A program made the translations under genes and the position numbers. The notes under the pieces are model-generated. The model ran no database searches. It was given only the letters and a program-made list of their open reading frames with translations, and was not told the DNA's origin. Shown piece by piece: positions 8,397 through 54,995 of a DNA stretch of 64,000 nucleotides. Position 1 is the first letter of the stretch; every line of letters starts with the position of its first letter. Origin of the DNA: Auanema rhodensis (Eukaryota; Animalia; Nematoda); assembly GCA_964057225.1 (NCBI GenBank), contig OZ059897.1:8804001-8868000 (forward strand), in the 5' to 3' direction.

Positions 8397-8841
8397 TTCT
8401 GTAAATTGACTGAATTATTTACATGAAAATCGAAAAATTCAACTACATATAGTACAGTACAATAGAAACATGGGAATGCACATGTGAACAGGAGTAAGGT
8501 TCTTGTAATTAATTATAAAACACTTGGAATAAAACTTGGTTTGAAGTTAATGATAACGAGAAATAGACACATGTTTATATATATATCTGACATTTAATAA
8601 TTTTTTTTTGAATAATTATAAGAAAAAACATTTATTTTTAAATTATTCCTTATAAGAAATTTGAAATTCATTCCATTATTCGCACATTTTTCAAAATAGA
8701 TGGCGGCACCTTTTTCCTTAAATATAAATTTTGTTTTAAAGATTAAAATCATTTTAAACTCAAAATCACAGCAATTAATCACAGGGTAAAAACCAAAAAA
8801 CAACAACAAATATTCTCACAAAAGGTTAAAAAAAAAGAAAT

Positions 8842-11800
8842 TTACATGTTATCTATCTGTCGAATTTCTTCTAATAATGAACGGAATAATGGACTTTTTC
8901 TCAAAATTGTTCCATTCGGAAGAGCTGCTTTAGCTGCTGGTCGTTCACCGTTTGTATATAACTTGAGGAAGAACTTCTTTCCCAAAGTTCTAACCTACAA
9001 TTCAAGAAAAATCATTTGCAATCATGTTACACAGTCATAGGAACTTACCTCTGGATCTCCATTAACTAAACAACCTGTTGAAAATTTCCGGAAAATTCTT
9101 TCATTTAATCCTCTAAAAATGAAAAAAAATGCTAAATTTATTTAAAAACTGTTTGATTTACGCTTCATCATTCGGAACTTCGTAGTGATTTAATGCTTGA
9201 TCAACCATTAGTACCCGTCCTCGATCAGCTCTCATACCATCTGTTGATATTAGAATAGGCAAATAGGCTTTTGCCATCTGAAAATATGGCCAAAAGAAGT
9301 ACGAATTTGTCGAAAAAAGTACAAACACGAGTATCTGAAGTAATTATATTCACAAATTCCTTAATTGTGATCTGTGGAGCTCTTTTGTCCTGAAAAAAAT
9401 CGAAAAACAATGAATTGAATTGGAAACAAACAAACTTTGCAATCATTAGCTTTTCGTATAAGTTGATCACATGTAGCTTTAGCTAAACGGTTAGCACATT
9501 TGAAAAAATGATATTTTGGTATAAATTCTATTGTAAAATAGGATAACAAGTCTAGTGCTGCTGAATAAACCTTAATAATAATTAAATTATATTATAATTA
9601 ATATAATATAAATTATATTTACATTATATAAACTATCATTAAGGACACGATTTAACACATATATCGTTGATTCAATATAATCTGATACACTTCGATCTGC
9701 ATTCATATTTTCCAGCTTTTCCCTAACTTCAGCTATACTATCTAGCTTTTTCTGCCACTGTTTGGAGAATATTTTGGCAACCTAAGCTTATATACTGCTT
9801 GAAATGAGTGAGTATGAGTGAACTTACAGTCTCTGTCCCAAAGCAAGCAACAGCTTTAGAGCTAAGACCTTTCTGACTTGATGGAATGATGTTAAGAAGA
9901 TCTTCTTCTGTCTGATCTTCTGAATGAGTTGAGTTTATTTCCATATTTGATAATGATCTTCTGAATTTTTTCATAAGTTTTCATTTTTTTTTAAAGATTT
10001 GCAACCCTTTTAACGCTGCTGGAACAATCATATTTTCTTTTTCCATGAACTTATTCGTTTTTGGACGCTCACTTCGAGTTGAACTTCCTGTTGACTTTCG
10101 ACGAGTTTTATTAATCTGAAACTATGATGAATGTCAAATGAGAACAACTATTCTTCTTGCTTTTAATGTTTCCACAGAACTATTGGATGCTAGGGATTCA
10201 GCTGATATTGGACGACCTCTCAAGGACTTTCGAGATACAGCTTTTTCTATAATCACGTTTCATCATTTTACCATTTTTTTTAAAACCTCGATCAACTGAT
10301 TCAGTTGAAACTGGACGACGCGATACACTAGATCTCGATTTTGTTCTTTTCTGAGTTGATCGAATTGATGATGAAGATGCTGGAGGGCGTGGTGGTAGAA
10401 GAGCTAAATCAGCTGTACCATGAACTTCCGTTGGAGATAAATCTCAAAAACTTATCAATATAATCATTTAAAGGGCTTTAGGAAAAGCTCAACATACCGA
10501 CAGGTGTATACAGCTTTGGACGATGTGGCGGAAATTCTGTGATTTCTTCTGAAAATAAGTTTTTCGGTCGATGTACTTCAACATCATCGTTCGAAACCTG
10601 AACAAAGATAACGTTGGAATAAGTTTCAAAAAATAAGAAAAGGTTTACAGGATTTTCTTCTATTAATTTGGAATCGATAGACGATAGAATATTAGCTCTC
10701 AAGGATTTGATTTCATCTTGTAAATCTTTAGCTCTTTGATAATCTTCTTCATCAATTGCTTCTTTCTAAATTATTTTATTTTTGAAAATATTAAAAGTTT
10801 TCTTTCTCTCACCATATCTCTTTCTAATTCAAAAACTTCTTTTTTGGCTTTCTTCAAAGTTCTTTGAACTATCTGAGCTTGCTTAGCCAAAGGAAAATTT
10901 TCATTCTAAACCAAAAACTTTTTGTAAAAAAAAAAAAAAGTTTTTCATACTGTTACAGCTTGTAGCTTGTTTGCCTCAACAATTTTTGCTAACTTATCAA
11001 GTTCTTCTGAATATCTGAAAATATTTTTGAAGTGGAAACTTAAGAGACTATTGTTCAACTTTACCGTCCTCTGCCATCTCTAGTTGGAACTTTTCGTTTT
11101 TCTTCCCAATTTTCAAACATTTCATGCTCAACGGCATCTGGTAGAGCTTTTCCAATAATTTTTACATTTACAAGTCCAACCTGTTATGAATTGTTCGTAA
11201 TATTTTAATTTTTAATTAAAATTTACTTGATTTTCTGGATTAGTATCCATATCATAACATCCTAGTATTCGTAAAACTAAAGATGAACATGCTTCATCCA
11301 AATATACAGTTTTCATTTCATGTTTACTAGATAAACTTTTATTTTTTTTAAATTTAACTTCTCTAAAATTTATTTTTTCAAAATAAAAAATACGAATTTT
11401 CAATAGAATCTTACCCTAGGCTTTTCTCGCCTTCTTTCCCATTACATACTAATTCTAAACCTTCGGCTGAAAATATTATAATAATTTAAAATAAAATTTA
11501 ATAAAATAAAAATGATCAAGTTTATTATAAACTTGAGCATGATCTTTTATTCTGTTGAGCTTTGAAGTTTGATAACTAACGCTACTACACAGGATCAGCA
11601 ATTAATCTTATGATTCTTACAATTTTTAAGCTTTAACATCTTTGTTTTTCAAAGTTTTCAAAGTTTAAAAATTATAAAATAAATAGAAATAATGAACTAT
11701 AAATAGATTATATATTAAAAACAAAAATAAACATACGAATATAATAATTATGACATGTTATTAGTAATTTTTCCACATTACTCAATTTGCGAAACAGCAA

Positions 11801-47364: not shown

Positions 47365-47410
<46 letters not shown>

Positions 47411-48694
47411 ATCTCTTTATCTTTATCTGTTTTATTGTTATAGTTTATTATTATTATTTATATAGTTACATATAGATATTGGAAAAAAACTTTATTGATA
47501 CGTATACAGCATGAAACATCAAATTATTGAAATCACAGTAGTGATACGAGAAACAGCTATACAATTATACGAATTTTCTGAGAAAAAAAATGAACAGAAT
47601 TGTGGAAAAAAGGAAAAAAAAAGAAAAATTTATTAAAAAATAATTAATTAATAGAAAAATGAAAAATAATAAAATTCTGTGCATTTTCGTTTTCAAATGA
47701 ATACAATAGACAAGACTTTGTTGCCTAAAACATATTTTTGGATGTTGTGGTCGATTTTGTTTTTTGTGAGTTGTGTTAACGGAAAATGCCGGATCTTGAA
47801 ACTGACTTGATCCGCTGATGATATTGGGTTCAATGTCTGAATAGATCCGTTCAAGACCAGCTTTGCTTGGGTAAGAAATAGCAGCTGAGCCATGTGGCGA
47901 TATATGACTTCAGCTAAATCATACATTAATCTATGTATAGATATAAATACACCAAATAAATACATGTAATAGAGCACACCGAAGAAAATGCGGATAGCTA
48001 ACTTATAATTTTTGGGAATGAAATATGCAGCTTTAAGAATTATATGAGAAAATGAAAAGAAAACGAAAAGCTAGCATTGAAGATATTACATGAAGCAGCA
48101 ATAGAGTATGCTGACACTAGACATTCATGAAGTTTCCGATAGCTAAGCTCATACAGCTTTAACACATGATAAGAGCAAAGTTGGAAAAAAAGACTAGCGA
48201 GGAAATAGCTAACGATTCATATGTTGTTGTTAGTTTTTTTCAAAATATATATGTGTGTTCACGTATATATTGAATACCAGCTATGAAATACAATGTATAT
48301 TCTGCTATTGATGAGAATTAAGAAAGGAGAGAAGAAAATAGAGAGATAATGGAAATGATTGACATCAATACCCGCACACATGTCGTCTGAATACAGCTGC
48401 ATTCATTTGACCGAGCGAGTTCGAAAGCAATACGAATATTCTGTGGACAGTTGCACACGTCACCGGTACATACACTTAGTTACAATTGCTATGAAACGAG
48501 CTCATGCTTGCTTCACAGAATTGATAACAACTGAAGCAGGACTATCATCCCCAACGCATAAATGAGCTGGGAAGATATGACGAGATTCTGGCTGACAGAG
48601 TCGTCGTCATTGATGCATCAGTAGAAGATTGGTTGGGCTTGGATGTTATTTCCCGTGAAGTAACAGGTTGTGATTGCGACTGTCCGGCGCACCG

Positions 48695-51607
48695 TCAACT
48701 AGAGGAGTCGGACTCATTAGAGCCGACTTCCAGAATTTCGGGATGTCTCTCGATGACACGCATAAGGATGCCGTTAATGTATACTCTAAGTTTTTGGTTG
48801 CATACTTCTTGCTCTCTCAAAGCTTCCATAAGCTGAAACATATTCAAAAATCGATAAGGAAAATACTAAACGATGATGAATTACCTGTGAAGAATCTCCT
48901 CCGATCAATTCATCAGCAAGAGATGGAGTATCAGCAAGAAGTGAATGACCACGTTCAACACTGACAGCTAACATTTGATTCTGAATGTCATCTCTTTCTC
49001 TCGTCAAGATGCGGATTGTTGCACGAGCTTCATCTAGTTCTTCTTCTAAGTCAAGCATCTGAATAGAATGAATGAGCTAACAAGCATTGTTTATTGTAGT
49101 TTACCTGCTCAGCTATTGAGCCCTGTCTGATTCCGCCAGCATTCTTCCGAAGCTCTTCAGTTTGTTGAGTTAATGCTTCAACCATTTCTGAGCTAGAATC
49201 TATATCTTGCTTAGCTTCCTCTTTGAATCTACAATGGTTGAATAAAAAACATAATATTTCCAGCTTAAAGCTTACTTTTTGAACTGTCGTTCCAACTTTA
49301 TTCTCTCATCTTCTAAATCTTCGATAGTCAATCGACTATCATCGAGATCAGCTTTCAATTCATCTGATTGGTCTCTCAATTTTCTAACTTCTTCTTTAGC
49401 TTTCTCGCTTTCGCGTCTAGCTATTAGCAAATCCTTCTCAAGCATTTGATATTTCAATGTGAGACTTTCAGATTCTAATTGTTTTTCTCTTTCTGAACGG
49501 TTCAGAAGGTCTTTAGCACGCATTTTCTCTTCATGAATTTGCTCTTTATATCTGAAAGTACAATAGGATTCATAAAAAAATTCTTCTAAATCTTCTAAAT
49601 ACCTTTGTTCTGTAGTATGTAATTGTTCTTCTAATACATGTAATCGTTCTGTTAAAAGTGCATTTTCCATCTTAAGTCTTGTTCGTTCATCATCACCCAG
49701 TTGCTGCTTTTCCTGCATCTCCTGCATCTGCTTGGAGATACTGTTCATCTGCAAAATAAAAACATAAGTATTAAATTTTTAAAAATTTGAAGAAGAAAAA
49801 ACATTTTTTCGGCATCTTAAATTCTTATTTTTTCTTTTTTTTTAATAAAAATTCTCTAACAAATATTTGATAACTTTATCATAAAATAATCTTATCCCAT
49901 CTCGCCATCCTGATGTCCGAGTTATGAGTTGTTTCCATGTTCCCAGCATTTTTAAAACTTTTTTTATCAAAAAAAAGTATTTTTTGTTCAAAAATAAATG
50001 TAATGAAAGTATGTGATAGATAGAAAAGAAACTACAAGAATTCAATATATTAGTTTGATTGTTGTACACACAGTATTCTCCATAAAAGCTTATGTCGCAT
50101 ACCAATATGAAATATGATTATTCCAATCTTTTGAATTAAGAAATACAATGAAAACGACATCAAAATAGTCGAATATATGTAAGAAAATCAGAAAAGTTGT
50201 AAAATAATATCATTTTCTGGTCAAATCACACATTTTTCTCTTACAAGAAACTATCAATGATTTTACATATTACTTCATACCTCAATACGCTAACAACTAA
50301 CCCGTTTTGGTGACGTCTTTAAGGTTTTACTGGATGAAAAGTGCTTGATGAGGAGCAGAAAATACAGAAATCAATCAAACTGATGGTTACAACTAATAGA
50401 AACAACTTTTCGAACAGAAATCAACGTGTCTTTCTGTCTGGCTAAGTTTGAATTATGTCCAAGTTATTATGATGAAAATATTGGTAGAAATCGATTGTCG
50501 AAAAACAAGAATTAGCAGTAAAGAAGCAAAACATAGTCTGAATTACTCAAGACTGTGAGTGTTTAACATAACTAGATCAAACGAAATTCTGGTATTAGTT
50601 ATACTAACTATACATATTGACAGATGCGTTGTACATGTTCAGTTTGTTCCTCTCATCGTATTTATTTGAATGGAACATCTTAACAGCTTTTTCTTTATTA
50701 AACCTTCTTTCTCCTTCTCACGTCCCTTACAACTTTGGGACTATTTTTAACACAAAATTTGCGTGTTTTTTTTGCAAAGTATTAGGAGGGAAAAATAAAG
50801 ATTTATTTTGATTTTTGAAATTCAGAGCAAGGCACATAAGGTTCAAATTAATATTTTCATTTTTCATTTGACGTGGTTTGATGTCGAAAAATTGAGTGAA
50901 ATAATGATTGTTTTTTCAAAAAAGAAAAAATGAACAACAATTCAAACAGTTAGGAAGATCTAATCTTACATTTTCTTTAATAATTATATAAATATCTATT
51001 ATAATAACTTTAAATATGTTAAATTTTTGAAATAAATTAATATAATTTCATATGATTTAGCATAATCTTCATCAATTATTACCACGTGAACAATTTTATT
51101 TTCACTTGCAAAATTCGTCGTTTATTTACTTTAAAACTATTTGCGTGGAACGGTTGTTTTTTTTTTCAATTTAACCAATATTATCACAATACCGTTTTCA
51201 ACTTCATATTACCTTTCTTTATCAATTCAGTTTTTTTTTATTTTCTATTTGTTAACTCGCGTGTACTGTCTCTCTCTCTCTTTCTCTCTCATTCTTTCTC
51301 TCTCTCTCTCTTTTTAAGTAAACTGTTTGATGAAAGGCATGTAAACTTCACCAGCTGTACTCACATTTGGATTTCCGCTTTCAGGTTTTACTCTTACACT
51401 CACACATTCTCTCGTTATTAATATGAATTGGAACGGAAAAAAATATTTTACCTCACGGGAGAGATAGGATTCCTGCATTTCTTGATCGGAAAATGATATC
51501 AATTCTGGATCAGATCCAAGTGAATCACGTCGAGACCGTGTGCCATACAGACGAGAGGCAACTGAAGCGCTACTCGCCGACGAGCCGTTTAGCCTCATGG
51601 GCGAATC
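48695..51607 (-). CDS. rfip-1: Rab11 family-interacting protein, class II (RAB11FIP3/4, Nuf, rfip-1-like): coiled coil plus C-terminal Rab11-binding domain; shared exons, ~337 aa
   Basis: Exons 51607-51452, 49748-49603, 49551-49276, 49228-49105, 49058-48885 and 48832-48695, all phase-consistent. RTRLKMENALLTERLHVLEEQL..EREKQLESESL parallels FIP3/4 (RLxQENxQLVHRxxxLEE..EREK). SLADEL..LMEALREQEVCNQKLRVYINGILMRVIERHPEILEV matches the RBD consensus (LxxYIDxIxxxIxExxPxILEV). Confidence 0.9.
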
Positions 51608-52830
51608 CTAAAGAACATATAGAATTAATTCTTCAAATTATAAACTGAATAAACTATAATAATAATGATAGTCAGTAACTATATATGTTATGAATTTCTA
51701 TAGAATAATGTAATAATTCAATAGAAATTTATAAGAAATTCAAAAAGAAAGAATAAGAATTGGTTGAGGTTATGTCAAAAGATTTTTAGAAATCAAAAAA
51801 AGGAAGAAAAAAAAACTTTTTAATATAGTAGTTATGACACTAGCTATATCATAACTATTCAGTTAGTCCATATAATATTATATCAATTCACACAACGTGT
51901 ATATAAGAAAAACTGAATAGACATTTCAAGAAAGATCGACGAAATCTGGGTGTATTATAGCTGTTTACAACAAAACTTTTTGATACCAACAATGAAGAAA
52001 AAAAATGGAATAAATGGTTCAAGGAATGAGTGGCGATTGAAGGGTAAAAAAATAAATTTGGAGCTCTTTTTCCTTATTTTCTATTCGGAAAGAACATATA
52101 GAATATATGGATAAAGAATGATGTATATATATATATATATATATTTATGTGAATGAATGGTTATGGAATAATGCTTAAACGTGAACGAATGTTGAATCAT
52201 TTGGTTGACACGGAGAGTATTTCCGTAAAAAGGCCAAATGCTAGAAGAGGGCACACGTCGACAGTTGAATAAACGAAATAATAAAGTTAAAATTAGCATT
52301 TAGCAAATATGAAATATTATATTCCTTTTTAAAACCTGATTATTAATAATTATTTTCATATTTTAACGAAAAACGAGGGCATAATTCACATAGAAATTGA
52401 AATATTTTTATGTTGAAGTTTGATCAACAAAAATTAAATTTCTCGTATCAATGATTGAAAAAAAAGAGTTGTTTTCATTGGATGTTAGAGATATATACAT
52501 ATGATTAATAGAATATAATTGAGAGAAACTTACATGGAAATAAGGCATTGGATTGGGTATGTATAGTTACCGGTAATAATAATATAAAACCCGTTATATA
52601 TAAATTATAAGACAAATTGATAGCTTTCTCGAATAAATTAATTATTGGAATAAAACCTAATGATATATATCTGCCGGTAGTTAGGTGTGGTGTGGTTATT
52701 GTATTCAATTCAAGTCTGGCAGTCTTCGTAGGGTTGATGAATCGAAGAATTCAGATTGACGAATCCCCCAGCGAATCGTAGGAAGCCAAGGCTTGAATGT
52801 GAAAGAGGAATGAGCACGGCACTGAGGCTT

Positions 52831-52843
52831 GTCGCCTGGCAAC
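52831..52843. promoter_or_regulatory. X-box-like (RFX/DAF-19-type) element GTCGCC-T-GGCAAC
   Basis: Matches the GTNRCC-N(0-3)-RGYAAC consensus and lies in a GC-richer island ~1.2 kb upstream of the FIP exon at 51607. Confidence 0.4.
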
Positions 52844-54995
52844 CGGCTTCACGTTCATACAAGCCGTCGCATTGCCGTCAGAGTATCAGAGCTAAGAGGG
52901 GAGATGTAGGATAGAACTTCAACAAGAGAGAGAAGAACGAGATAGAGAGAGAGACCGGGAAGGAGAATGTGTAGGAGTGAGAAAGAGACGGAGAAAATAT
53001 TTTTTGCCCTAATAGTAACATGCTTAAGAAGCTGAAAAGGTGCACTTTGGAAGCTTTACCTATGTCAGAGTGATTCCTAGAACAAGAATCACTGATATCA
53101 CTTCACCATTACTACTATATCATATAATTATAAGAAATTTGATGCAAAACACAAATCTAGAACGTAAATTGAAATAAAAAGTATCAAAAAGCATAGGTAG
53201 ATGGATACAAACATATACACACATATGCACGTTCAAAATTCTGATGTCATGATATAGGCGTGAGATGTTTGAAATAATAGTAAGCAAGAGAGAGCGAGAG
53301 AGTAAGATATAGAGAGAGAGAGAGAGAGAGAGAACAGAGGTAAAGAGAGAGAGAAATAAAAAGAGTATTCGAAGTAGGTATAGAGTAGAGAATATTGAAT
53401 GTTTGCGTGAATGTAGATTATCTCCTCTTTTCACAATTTTTTTTGTTTCAAAAAAAAAACAAATCAAAAATCGAGAACACAAACACTTTCAAATGAGCAC
53501 AATATGAACAATAATGTATGTGAACACAGGTGAAGATGAGAATACATTGAGTATATGATATGGCAAAATAAACGTCATTCGGGTGTTTGGTAAAATATTT
53601 TGTTAAGTAATCTGAAAGGTTTTTCAAATAGTTTTGATTAAGTATATGAATAGTAGATATACAATATTGGGCTAAAAACCGTTTTACACTGATCAAAATA
53701 GGTAAATTCAGACGAATAATGGTTATGAAACAACGATTATCCGTTCTTAACCCCTATGCTGAAGGGAGGATGTTGAATAGAAAGAACTTGGATGACAGGA
53801 GAGACGGGTGGGGCTGAATATGTAACCGAGATCATAATATCATCTGATTATTGAAGCTGTTTCACTATAATTATCATCTCCAATAAAGATATATGTGTTT
53901 TTGGAGTATAAAGTTATCATTGGAATTGTCTTCTGGAAATGAACAGCATTGCTTCATCTGTGACGAGATGACAAAGAATATTTCGTCGGATAAAGACTAA
54001 GATGAGAGAGAATCCCCACTTTTCAAGCCAAATTAGGGCCATCATCAACCAGAAGTCGTCACGTCAATGATAGACAGGCATGGAATACGAGATGAGCGCC
54101 TTATGTTGTGGCTAGAAGTAGATGAAGAATGATGAAGATGACGACGGCGCATTTAAGAAGATGGGCGATGATATTGACAATCCCGTTCAGCATCATCAAC
54201 GTTCACGTCAGCTTGAACGGATCAGACGGCAAACGAGGACATCCAAAGGAACGCTAAACCGTGCGTGAGATATACAGATATGTATAATATGAATAAACAA
54301 TAAGTGAATAAGAGATTTCAAGAGATTTAAAAAATTGAAAGAAAACTGCTTGGAGCAAAGCAAGCTTTAAGATCAGCCCACGACGAGCAAAGTAGGCGGG
54401 CCATTAAGAATGAGAGTACGACGATGGTACATGATGAAATAGATGTAGATATTGTTAGAGAACAAGAGAATACAAAACAAAAAAAAGCCGAAAGATTGAA
54501 AAAGGAAATAGAAGGAAAGAAGGAAAATACGACAGACTCAGGTAGTATGTTTAGATCGGCTCATACAGAGACGAAAGACATGTCCACAAACAAACTAGGC
54601 GCATGACCACATCGAGCTCATAGCGAAGAAATAGCAAAGGGATTGTGAGGTTAAGAAGGAGAAGAGAAAGTTGGAGATTGAAAGAGAAATTTGTTGAAGA
54701 CAAGATTGGAAACTGCTCATGCATCTAGTCAGACTATCTATATATGTTATGTATATGATAGTCGTATATGTGGACAAATGCTGTTATCCATTGAAATATA
54801 CTTTCCAGAAAGAAAAAAGGACGTCTAACTTCCTCATTTTTCAAATGCAAATGTAATTTATGCGAATAATTAATTCAAAAAATTGGTAGAACAGTAGTCG
54901 TTTTGGTGGCGAATGATAGACGGGAATGACTGCATGAAATGAGATCTATGCTTAACTATTGAAGGGTAATAGTATTTATAATTTTTAAAATTAAA

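Follow-up and report, generated by a model that had tools for sequence, protein, structure and literature searches.

A conserved UGA-C stop codon in nematode rfip-1 is a candidate site of programmed translational readthrough

We analyzed a stretch of 64,000 nucleotides (nt) from the nematode Auanema rhodensis (GenBank assembly GCA_964057225.1, contig OZ059897.1, forward-strand positions 8,804,001 to 8,868,000), referred to here as the window and numbered from its first letter. Its minus strand carries the apparent orthologue of Caenorhabditis elegans rfip-1, a gene for a Rab11 family-interacting protein (Rab11-FIP), in which the reading frame stays open for 49 codons beyond a UGA stop that follows the Rab11-binding domain (RBD). 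UGA followed by C is kept across at least three major nematode groups, including C. elegans, and the stretch downstream of it evolves as protein. Ribosomes that pass the stop therefore very probably produce an extended isoform, whose tail carries a conserved motif. Programmed readthrough of the rfip-1 UGA, giving a longer isoform under selection, is the explanation that we favor, and we consider it likely.

An open frame follows the rfip-1 stop codon in the window

A preliminary description of this DNA, made from its letters alone, had proposed a readthrough site at the end of the FIP open reading frame (ORF), consisting of TGA, CGG, 49 open codons, and a closing TGA-TAG. We recovered exactly this arrangement on the minus strand, where ...HPEILEVGSNESDSSS is followed by TGA (48697-48695) and CGG (48694-48692), and the 49 sense codons after the first stop (48694-48548) are closed by a tandem TGA TAG (48547-48542). 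The description had also put the GC content of the extension at about 50%; the count is 73/147 nt (0.497), versus 0.31 in the distal 3′ untranslated region (3′UTR). The Rab11-binding domain that it had named upstream of the stop was identified as Pfam RBD-FIP (PF09457, E = 4.7e-11) in the 44 residues of the last exon preceding the first stop. The features of this region are as follows.

48695..48697, minus strand: first stop TGA, proposed to be leaky (sequence; RNA contigs without variant; homologous TGA in 11/11 sequences)
48683..48694, minus strand: 3′ context CGG TGC GCC GGA (ortholog table)
48548..48694, minus strand: 49-codon extension, opening with the conserved RCAGQ, followed by a variable linker rich in Ser/Thr/Gln and predicted to be disordered, and closing with the conserved tip (alignment, structure prediction)
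48548..48604, minus strand: conserved tip motif TTLSARISSYLPSSFMRWG (alignment with relatives)
48542..48547, minus strand: second stop, tandem TGA TAG (sequence, relatives)
47610..48541, minus strand: rest of the 3′UTR, AT-rich with GC 0.31 (RNA contigs ending at 47565-47681, composition)

Taken alone, the open frame of the window is unremarkable and is weak evidence, with a chance of about 0.1. An open frame of at least 49 codons is expected in 8 to 12% of composition-matched or dinucleotide-shuffled sequences, as estimated both analytically from local composition and from dinucleotide shuffles, and the same UTR holds other stop-free runs that are as long as the extension or longer. Separately, stop-free runs of 125 and 103 codons occur in two frames at 47695-48070 (minus strand) inside the distal 3′UTR; such runs are unusual at 31% GC, and their translation resembles low-complexity junk. 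The 3′UTR also carries an AATAAA at 47634-47629.

The stop codon and its context are conserved across nematodes

The comparison comprised 11 sequences: the window and ten others. These were the genomes of Caenorhabditis brenneri (L001), C. elegans (L011, with RNA contigs L012-L015), Pristionchus pacificus (L002), and Enterobius vermicularis (L003), together with soil metatranscriptome mRNAs (L004-L006), a strongylid-like mRNA (L007), Strongyloides stercoralis mRNA (L008/L009), and a clade III-like mRNA (L010). Species labels of the Logan and metatranscriptome contigs were assigned by similarity alone. Searches and alignments treated the Enterobius and Pristionchus pieces, and the sequences flanking each stop, as separate units, and exons were never joined.

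All 11 sequences, which come from clades III, IV, and V, have a serine codon of the AGY type (AGT or AGC) directly before the stop, TGA as the stop itself, and C at position +4. CGG follows TGA in six of the 11 (the window, both Caenorhabditis species, Pristionchus, the strongylid-like mRNA, and metatranscriptome mRNA L004). Within Rhabditina, the 11 bases past TGA are almost invariant (CGG-YGC-GCC-GG). The 12-nt context CGG TGC GCC GGA is the same in C. elegans and C. brenneri, with a difference at the last base only in Pristionchus and at one base in the strongylid-like mRNA. According to PMC3609751 and PMC4132726, UGA followed by C is the weakest termination context, and UGA-CGG is a readthrough context class described mostly from animal viruses (PMC4132726), which agrees with what the preliminary description had said of both. 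As judged from these sequences, the stop is retained, its context is leaky, and an ORF lies downstream, three of the features by which conserved readthrough is recognized.

The extension evolves as a coding sequence

The frame after TGA is open for 42 to 90 codons in all orthologous sequences, as tabulated for eight continuous mRNA or exon sequences and seen also in C. brenneri (42 codons). The chance of such an open frame is 0.007 to 0.19 per lineage (in Strongyloides, 54 codons at 25% GC, P = 0.007), and multiplication of these values across some seven independent lineages yields about 1e-10, with peptide similarity left uncounted. An alignment of the extensions in frame 0 shows a common start (x-x-A/P-G/D-Q) and a common tip motif, with a linker between them that varies in length; overall lengths change by whole codons only. 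The proline of the tip is invariant and the adjacent Leu/Ile nearly so. Homologues of the window tip, TTLSARISSYLPSSFMRWG, are TLSARISAYLPSSFLRWG (C. elegans), SLSQRLYSYIPTDWSFFRRS (Pristionchus), and TLSSRLYALLPTNSWSIFRR (Enterobius); in shorter form, the motif with which the frame ends is TLSARISSYLPSSFMRWG in the window and RLYSYLP..WSFFRR elsewhere.

The extensions of C. elegans and C. brenneri disagree at 12 of their 126 sites; codon position 3 accounts for 11 of these and position 1 for the other, and position 2 is unchanged throughout (binomial chance of such a split, about 5e-5). In frame 0, the nonsynonymous rate (dN) is 0.022 and the synonymous rate (dS) 0.353 (dN/dS = 0.06); in both other frames, dN exceeds dS. 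The extensions of this pair are 90.5% identical and gapless, versus 62.4% identity with ten gaps, mostly of lengths other than multiples of three, over the next 300 nt. Similarly, metatranscriptome mRNAs L005 and L006 are 96.6% identical and gapless in the extension versus 90.3% identical with six gaps beyond the second stop. Over 19 tip codons compared among the window, C. elegans, and the strongylid-like mRNA, the proportion of synonymous differences (pS) is 0.6 to 0.9, near saturation, and that of nonsynonymous differences (pN) is 0.14 to 0.23, a pattern seen in frame 0 only; one tip serine has switched codon family among these three (AGC/TCA).

Caenorhabditis and the strongylid-like mRNA have their second stop where the window has it, after RW-G/R. 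In the C. elegans genome sequence L011, the first stop occupies 8748-8750 (by our computation, about 5,891,878 of BX284602.5) and the second 8877-8879. In Enterobius, an intron lies five codons past the first stop and the frame continues in the next exon; the clade III-like mRNA shows an Enterobius-type junction already spliced (Q-F-A-D-Q joined to E-H). Taken together, these substitutions bear the signature that would be expected of a translated, selected peptide running from the first stop to the second.

The preliminary description had read the extension as an S/T/Q linker with a hydrophobic/basic tip, and the alignment resolves it into a variable Ser/Thr/Gln linker and a conserved aromatic/basic tip. 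It had named orthologue alignment as a check on readthrough; that alignment gave TGA-C in every sequence, an open frame, and the low dN/dS reported above. Sense codons at the stop position in relatives, frameshifting indels, and a lack of conservation, which it had listed as contrary findings, were sought and none was found. AlphaFold predicts the extension to be disordered except for a single short helix at LSARIS (mean predicted local distance difference test [pLDDT] score, 63; about 80 in the ten-residue block containing the helix). The extension has zero Pfam family matches, and a search of the ESM atlas returned only RBD-FIP neighbors, at scores below the reliable level.

Assembled transcripts retain the stop codon

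RNA contigs for the window came from four runs of one study; such contigs give no strand, abundance, or rare isoforms. Four spliced contigs span the first stop with letters identical to those of the window. Since no letter differs, the TGA is not an assembly error, a point that the preliminary description had wanted confirmed. The last exon is unspliced in the contigs from 48832 to about 47565-47681, with no intron separating the RBD from the stop, and the extension is thus the start of a 3′UTR of 1.0 to 1.1 kb. TGA is also kept in assembled mRNA contigs of eight species, among them the window organism, C. elegans (12 contigs), and the sources of six other contigs.

Annotated gene models bypass the conserved stop

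Nearly all annotated orthologues terminate in Ser at the homologous place. The exceptions are Pristionchus and Enterobius models, whose tails, ending ...SLSQRLYSYIPTDWSFFRRS and ...TLSSRLYALLPTNSWSIFRR..., resemble the post-stop TLSARISSYLPSSFMRWG of the window.

In C. elegans, all four RefSeq isoforms of F55C12.1 (P0054 and P0091-P0093) carry a 115-residue tail that begins ILSKLTVRRR and corresponds to the +1 frame of the rfip-1 stop region. The genome reads GAAGAAG-GT-GTAAGT at the donor, and the annotated coding sequence needs the GT 2 nt upstream (L011:8640-8760). Twelve C. elegans RNA contigs read GAAGAAGGT joined to GAATCC (L012:1120-1145), which indicates that the consensus GTAAGT donor is used, giving ...EEGESSPS followed by TGA. 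With a dN/dS of about 3.4 against C. brenneri in its +1 frame, the annotated tail is very probably an error and would otherwise represent no more than a minor form. We considered this +1 frame of the C. elegans and C. brenneri models as the conserved frame and rejected it: in addition to its dN/dS of 3.4, it contains stops in the window, and the RNA contigs favor the other donor. The comparison thus exposes a likely error in the C. elegans reference gene model, and since the true TGA is not annotated as a stop there, screens based on annotated stops would have missed the site. Automatic models from Ostertagia (P0044), Caenorhabditis bovis (P0046), C. brenneri (P0051), Teladorsagia (P0060), and Enterobius (P0070) likewise steer around this TGA, either by shifting frame or by inventing splice sites, and so acquire spurious C termini.

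Proposed mechanism

Under programmed readthrough, most ribosomes would halt at the UGA at 48697-48695 and release a short protein ending just past the Rab11-binding helix. A minority would decode the UGA with a near-cognate tRNA, a step that we infer, together with its efficiency. Leakiness would be favored by the conserved weak context, that is, the AGY serine codon, C at +4, and, in Rhabditina, CGG-YGC-GCC-GG. From work in yeast and mammals, the residue inserted at UGA is expected to be Trp, Arg, or Cys. Passage would add 49 residues, comprising a disordered Ser/Thr-rich linker and an aromatic/basic tip and ending at TGA-TAG, and purifying selection on the tail peptide suggests that the long isoform would be made and would matter. 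We would guess that the tip serves as a short linear motif for contact with a partner or with the endosomal membrane next to Rab11. With the RBD held against membrane-anchored Rab11, the flexible linker and tip could reach the membrane or a neighboring partner.

Alternative explanations

Several points weigh against readthrough. The case for passage beyond the stop comes from the comparison of sequences, and the context past +4 depends on the clade (CGG, CAA, CAG, or CTC), with no single extended motif common to all. Orthologues from Tylenchomorpha (Meloidogyne and Bursaphelenchus), compared as proteins only, have other ends. Since rare isoforms drop out of assembled contigs, loss of the stop through splicing in a minor form is possible, and an annotated Pristionchus model, if real, would mean that one lineage at least can obtain the tail by splicing. 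The tail could then be coding but reached by alternative splicing that removes the stop, with TGA marking the end of the major isoform. Four Pristionchus models (P0073, P0076, P0077, and P0080) join the RBD exon straight to the tip exon and skip a 63-nt, phase-1/phase-1 piece that carries AGC-TGA-CGG-TGC-GCC-GG (L002:13079-13141), and intron positions near the stop vary among lineages. However, these four models are probably mutually dependent and are known from annotation only. The window has no intron from the RBD to the stop, where the four RNA contigs are unspliced, and the mRNA contigs of eight species keep the stop. A stop that merely ended one isoform need not be TGA with C at +4 and a preceding AGY in all 11 sequences. 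The residues directly past the stop (x-x-A/P-G/D-Q) are also conserved, which indicates that coding starts at the stop. We consider it quite unlikely that the tail is reached by splicing instead of readthrough. Perfect conservation of the stop context inside the 63-nt Pristionchus piece argues for its use as an exon as well, possibly a cassette exon that bears the stop.

Recoding of the UGA in another way, as selenocysteine or by A-to-I editing to UGG, would likewise leave a genomic TGA with coding sequence beyond it, but we regard it as very improbable. Selenocysteine was rejected when an Rfam E-value scan of 47400-48900, which includes the 3′UTR, found neither a selenocysteine insertion sequence (SECIS) element nor any other match near threshold, the best being an unrelated one at 21 bits. 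To our knowledge, nematodes have one selenoprotein at most. As for editing, there is no stable or conserved duplex near the stop for ADAR, and the RNA contigs show TGA in every species examined, although partial editing would escape contigs. The preliminary description had suggested a short hairpin (UGCG..CGCA) after the stop. Its letters are present, but a stable or conserved fold is unsupported: the 101 nt fold worse than 198 of 200 shuffles (z = +1.95), and an alignment of eight species after the stop yields a consensus stem of only 3 bp (−0.57 kcal/mol), with no conserved RNA structure.

That the region is ordinary 3′UTR, with a frame open by chance and a similarity due to a conserved noncoding element, is extremely improbable. 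The chance of about 0.1 for the window frame alone would allow such a reading, and in Rhabditina 15 to 18 nt around the stop are conserved as nucleotides. It is contradicted by the comparative data, in which the peptide is preserved although its synonymous sites have reached saturation, codon position 3 carries the differences, a serine has switched codon family, lengths change by whole codons, and conservation ends at the second stop. A separate downstream ORF translated by reinitiation was also rejected, as there is no conserved in-frame ATG and conservation begins at the first post-stop codon.

The main functional rival accepts selected readthrough but takes the tail to be mainly a degron, a device that sets protein levels, rather than a binding or targeting addition. 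C. elegans removes many readthrough products with hydrophobic tails encoded by 3′UTRs (PMC10364623), and unstable readthrough isoforms have been described for FEM1B and MTCH2 (PMC11385324, PMC7863902). A specific motif of 15 to 20 residues, kept across clades III to V behind a variable linker, resembles a recognition motif more than a generic hydrophobic tail, and we consider a chiefly degradative role unlikely, if still worth weighing.

Relation to known readthrough systems

Programmed readthrough is a known phenomenon, of which rfip-1 would be a further case. Conserved readthrough of the kind found with PhyloCSF in animals includes five C. elegans candidates, among them C18B2.6 with TGA-C, and 283 Drosophila candidates (Jungreis et al. 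2011, as cited in PMC3609751 and PMC5100048). Like these genes, rfip-1 has a perfectly conserved TGA-C, a coding pattern of substitution between the stops, and a variable extension most conserved near its C terminus. In contrast to C18B2.6, for which a conserved stem-loop has been reported, rfip-1 is without one; its conservation covers three nematode clades rather than one genus, and its real stop is missing from the C. elegans annotation, where four RefSeq models use a shifted donor.

The vertebrate UGA-CUAG genes OPRL1, OPRK1, AQP4, and MAPK10, as described in PMC4132726, resemble rfip-1 in having UGA with a short conserved 3′ context and no requirement for structure, as well as a conserved last sense codon and extension conservation concentrated at the C terminus. 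They differ in the context itself, which is CUAG rather than the CGG-YGC-GCC-GG of Rhabditina or the CAA, CAG, or CTC found elsewhere in rfip-1. Type II viral signals, in which UGA is followed by CGG or CUA, are known mostly from animal viruses such as alphaviruses (PMC4132726). The identical UGA-CGG hexamer occurs in the window, Caenorhabditis, Pristionchus, the strongylid-like mRNA, and L004; rfip-1, unlike the viral cases, is cellular, and clades III and IV share only UGA-C. In peroxisomal readthrough of the LDHB/MDH1 type (PMC4207609), a minor extended isoform gains a short C-terminal motif, as is predicted for rfip-1. The rfip-1 tip, in contrast, matches no known targeting signal or Pfam family.

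The literature that we searched, which did not extend to the candidate list of Jungreis 2011, contained no report linking rfip-1, F55C12.1, or Rab11-FIP with readthrough. We know of no nematode readthrough candidate for which the extension has a defined role. Such candidates are few, with five in C. elegans (PMC5100048), and the rfip-1 site is conserved over much of the phylum, in a well-studied trafficking gene that encodes a RAB-11 effector. The site is present letter for letter in C. elegans and is therefore directly testable there. Tentatively, and as a possibility short of a probable one, the UGA of rfip-1 may be an ancient switch, older than the split of clades III, IV, and V, that sets the ratio of the short form to a long form whose nematode-specific C-terminal motif (R-L/I-Y/S-S/A-aromatic-L/I-P ... 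aromatic-aromatic-R-R/W) would recruit a distinct partner or membrane surface, with Pristionchus partly relying on skipping of the 63-nt cassette. If so, rfip-1 would be a natural case in which readthrough and alternative splicing serve as interchangeable routes to one isoform.

Gene identity and structure

Upstream of the RBD-FIP helix, a coiled coil encoded in an earlier exon matches Pfam PF25450 (Rab11-FIP3-like, E = 1.3e-10). The presence of both this domain and PF09457 assigns the window gene, by sequence, to the class II Rab11-FIPs (FIP3/FIP4/Nuf type), and its protein is a putative binder of Rab11-GTP, as judged from the domain. In a HMMER search with one exon, the closest relative was P0001 from Auanema sp. 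JU1783, whose C terminus, ...SHESDSSS, has the same end point as the window protein. A word search with P0001 found one FIP3/4-type protein per nematode species and the F55C12.1 isoforms at E = 3e-100. From this one-way link, with P0001 as the query toward C. elegans, the window gene appears to be the orthologue of the Rab11 effector gene rfip-1 (F55C12.1), whose database name is "Rab-11 Family Interacting-Protein." RFIP-1 is the FIP3/FIP4 orthologue (PMC10686230). The exons and introns of the gene within the window are listed below.

48698..48832, minus strand: coding part of the last exon, with the FIP-RBD helix and a short Ser-rich end, last codon AGT (Ser) (Pfam, RNA contigs)
48885..49058, minus strand: upstream coding exon (spliced RNA contigs, GT..AG introns)
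49105..49228, minus strand: upstream coding exon (RNA contigs)
49276..49551, minus strand: upstream coding exon with the Rab11-FIP3-like coiled coil (RNA contigs, PF25450)
49603..49748, minus strand: upstream coding exon (RNA contigs)
51452..51607, minus strand: exon with the start MRLNGSS..., common to the Auanema sp. JU1783 orthologue (RNA contigs, protein comparison)
48833-48884, 49059-49104, 49229-49275, 49552-49602, and 49749-51451, minus strand: GT..AG introns (spliced RNA contigs)

The next exon upstream of 51452..51607 starts at about 62305 and is reached by a further intron. The 51-nt intron at 49552-49602 is in frame and free of stops, and ORF-based exon calling therefore fuses two exons into one 160-codon ORF.

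Two minor observations concern the surroundings of the coding exons. A GTGACG hexamer in a GGTGACGTG-like setting lies 44 to 84 nt past the second stop in the window (48458-48463, minus strand), in both Caenorhabditis species (L012, about 1311; L001, about 4668), and in two metatranscriptome mRNAs (L005, about 1391); it may be a conserved 3′UTR element, although it was noticed after the fact and the indication is weak. Within the 10.7-kb intron of the FIP gene, separate low-depth RNA contigs from two runs map to 52533-52787, where they sit on a GC-rich island (GC 0.50 at 52700-52900).

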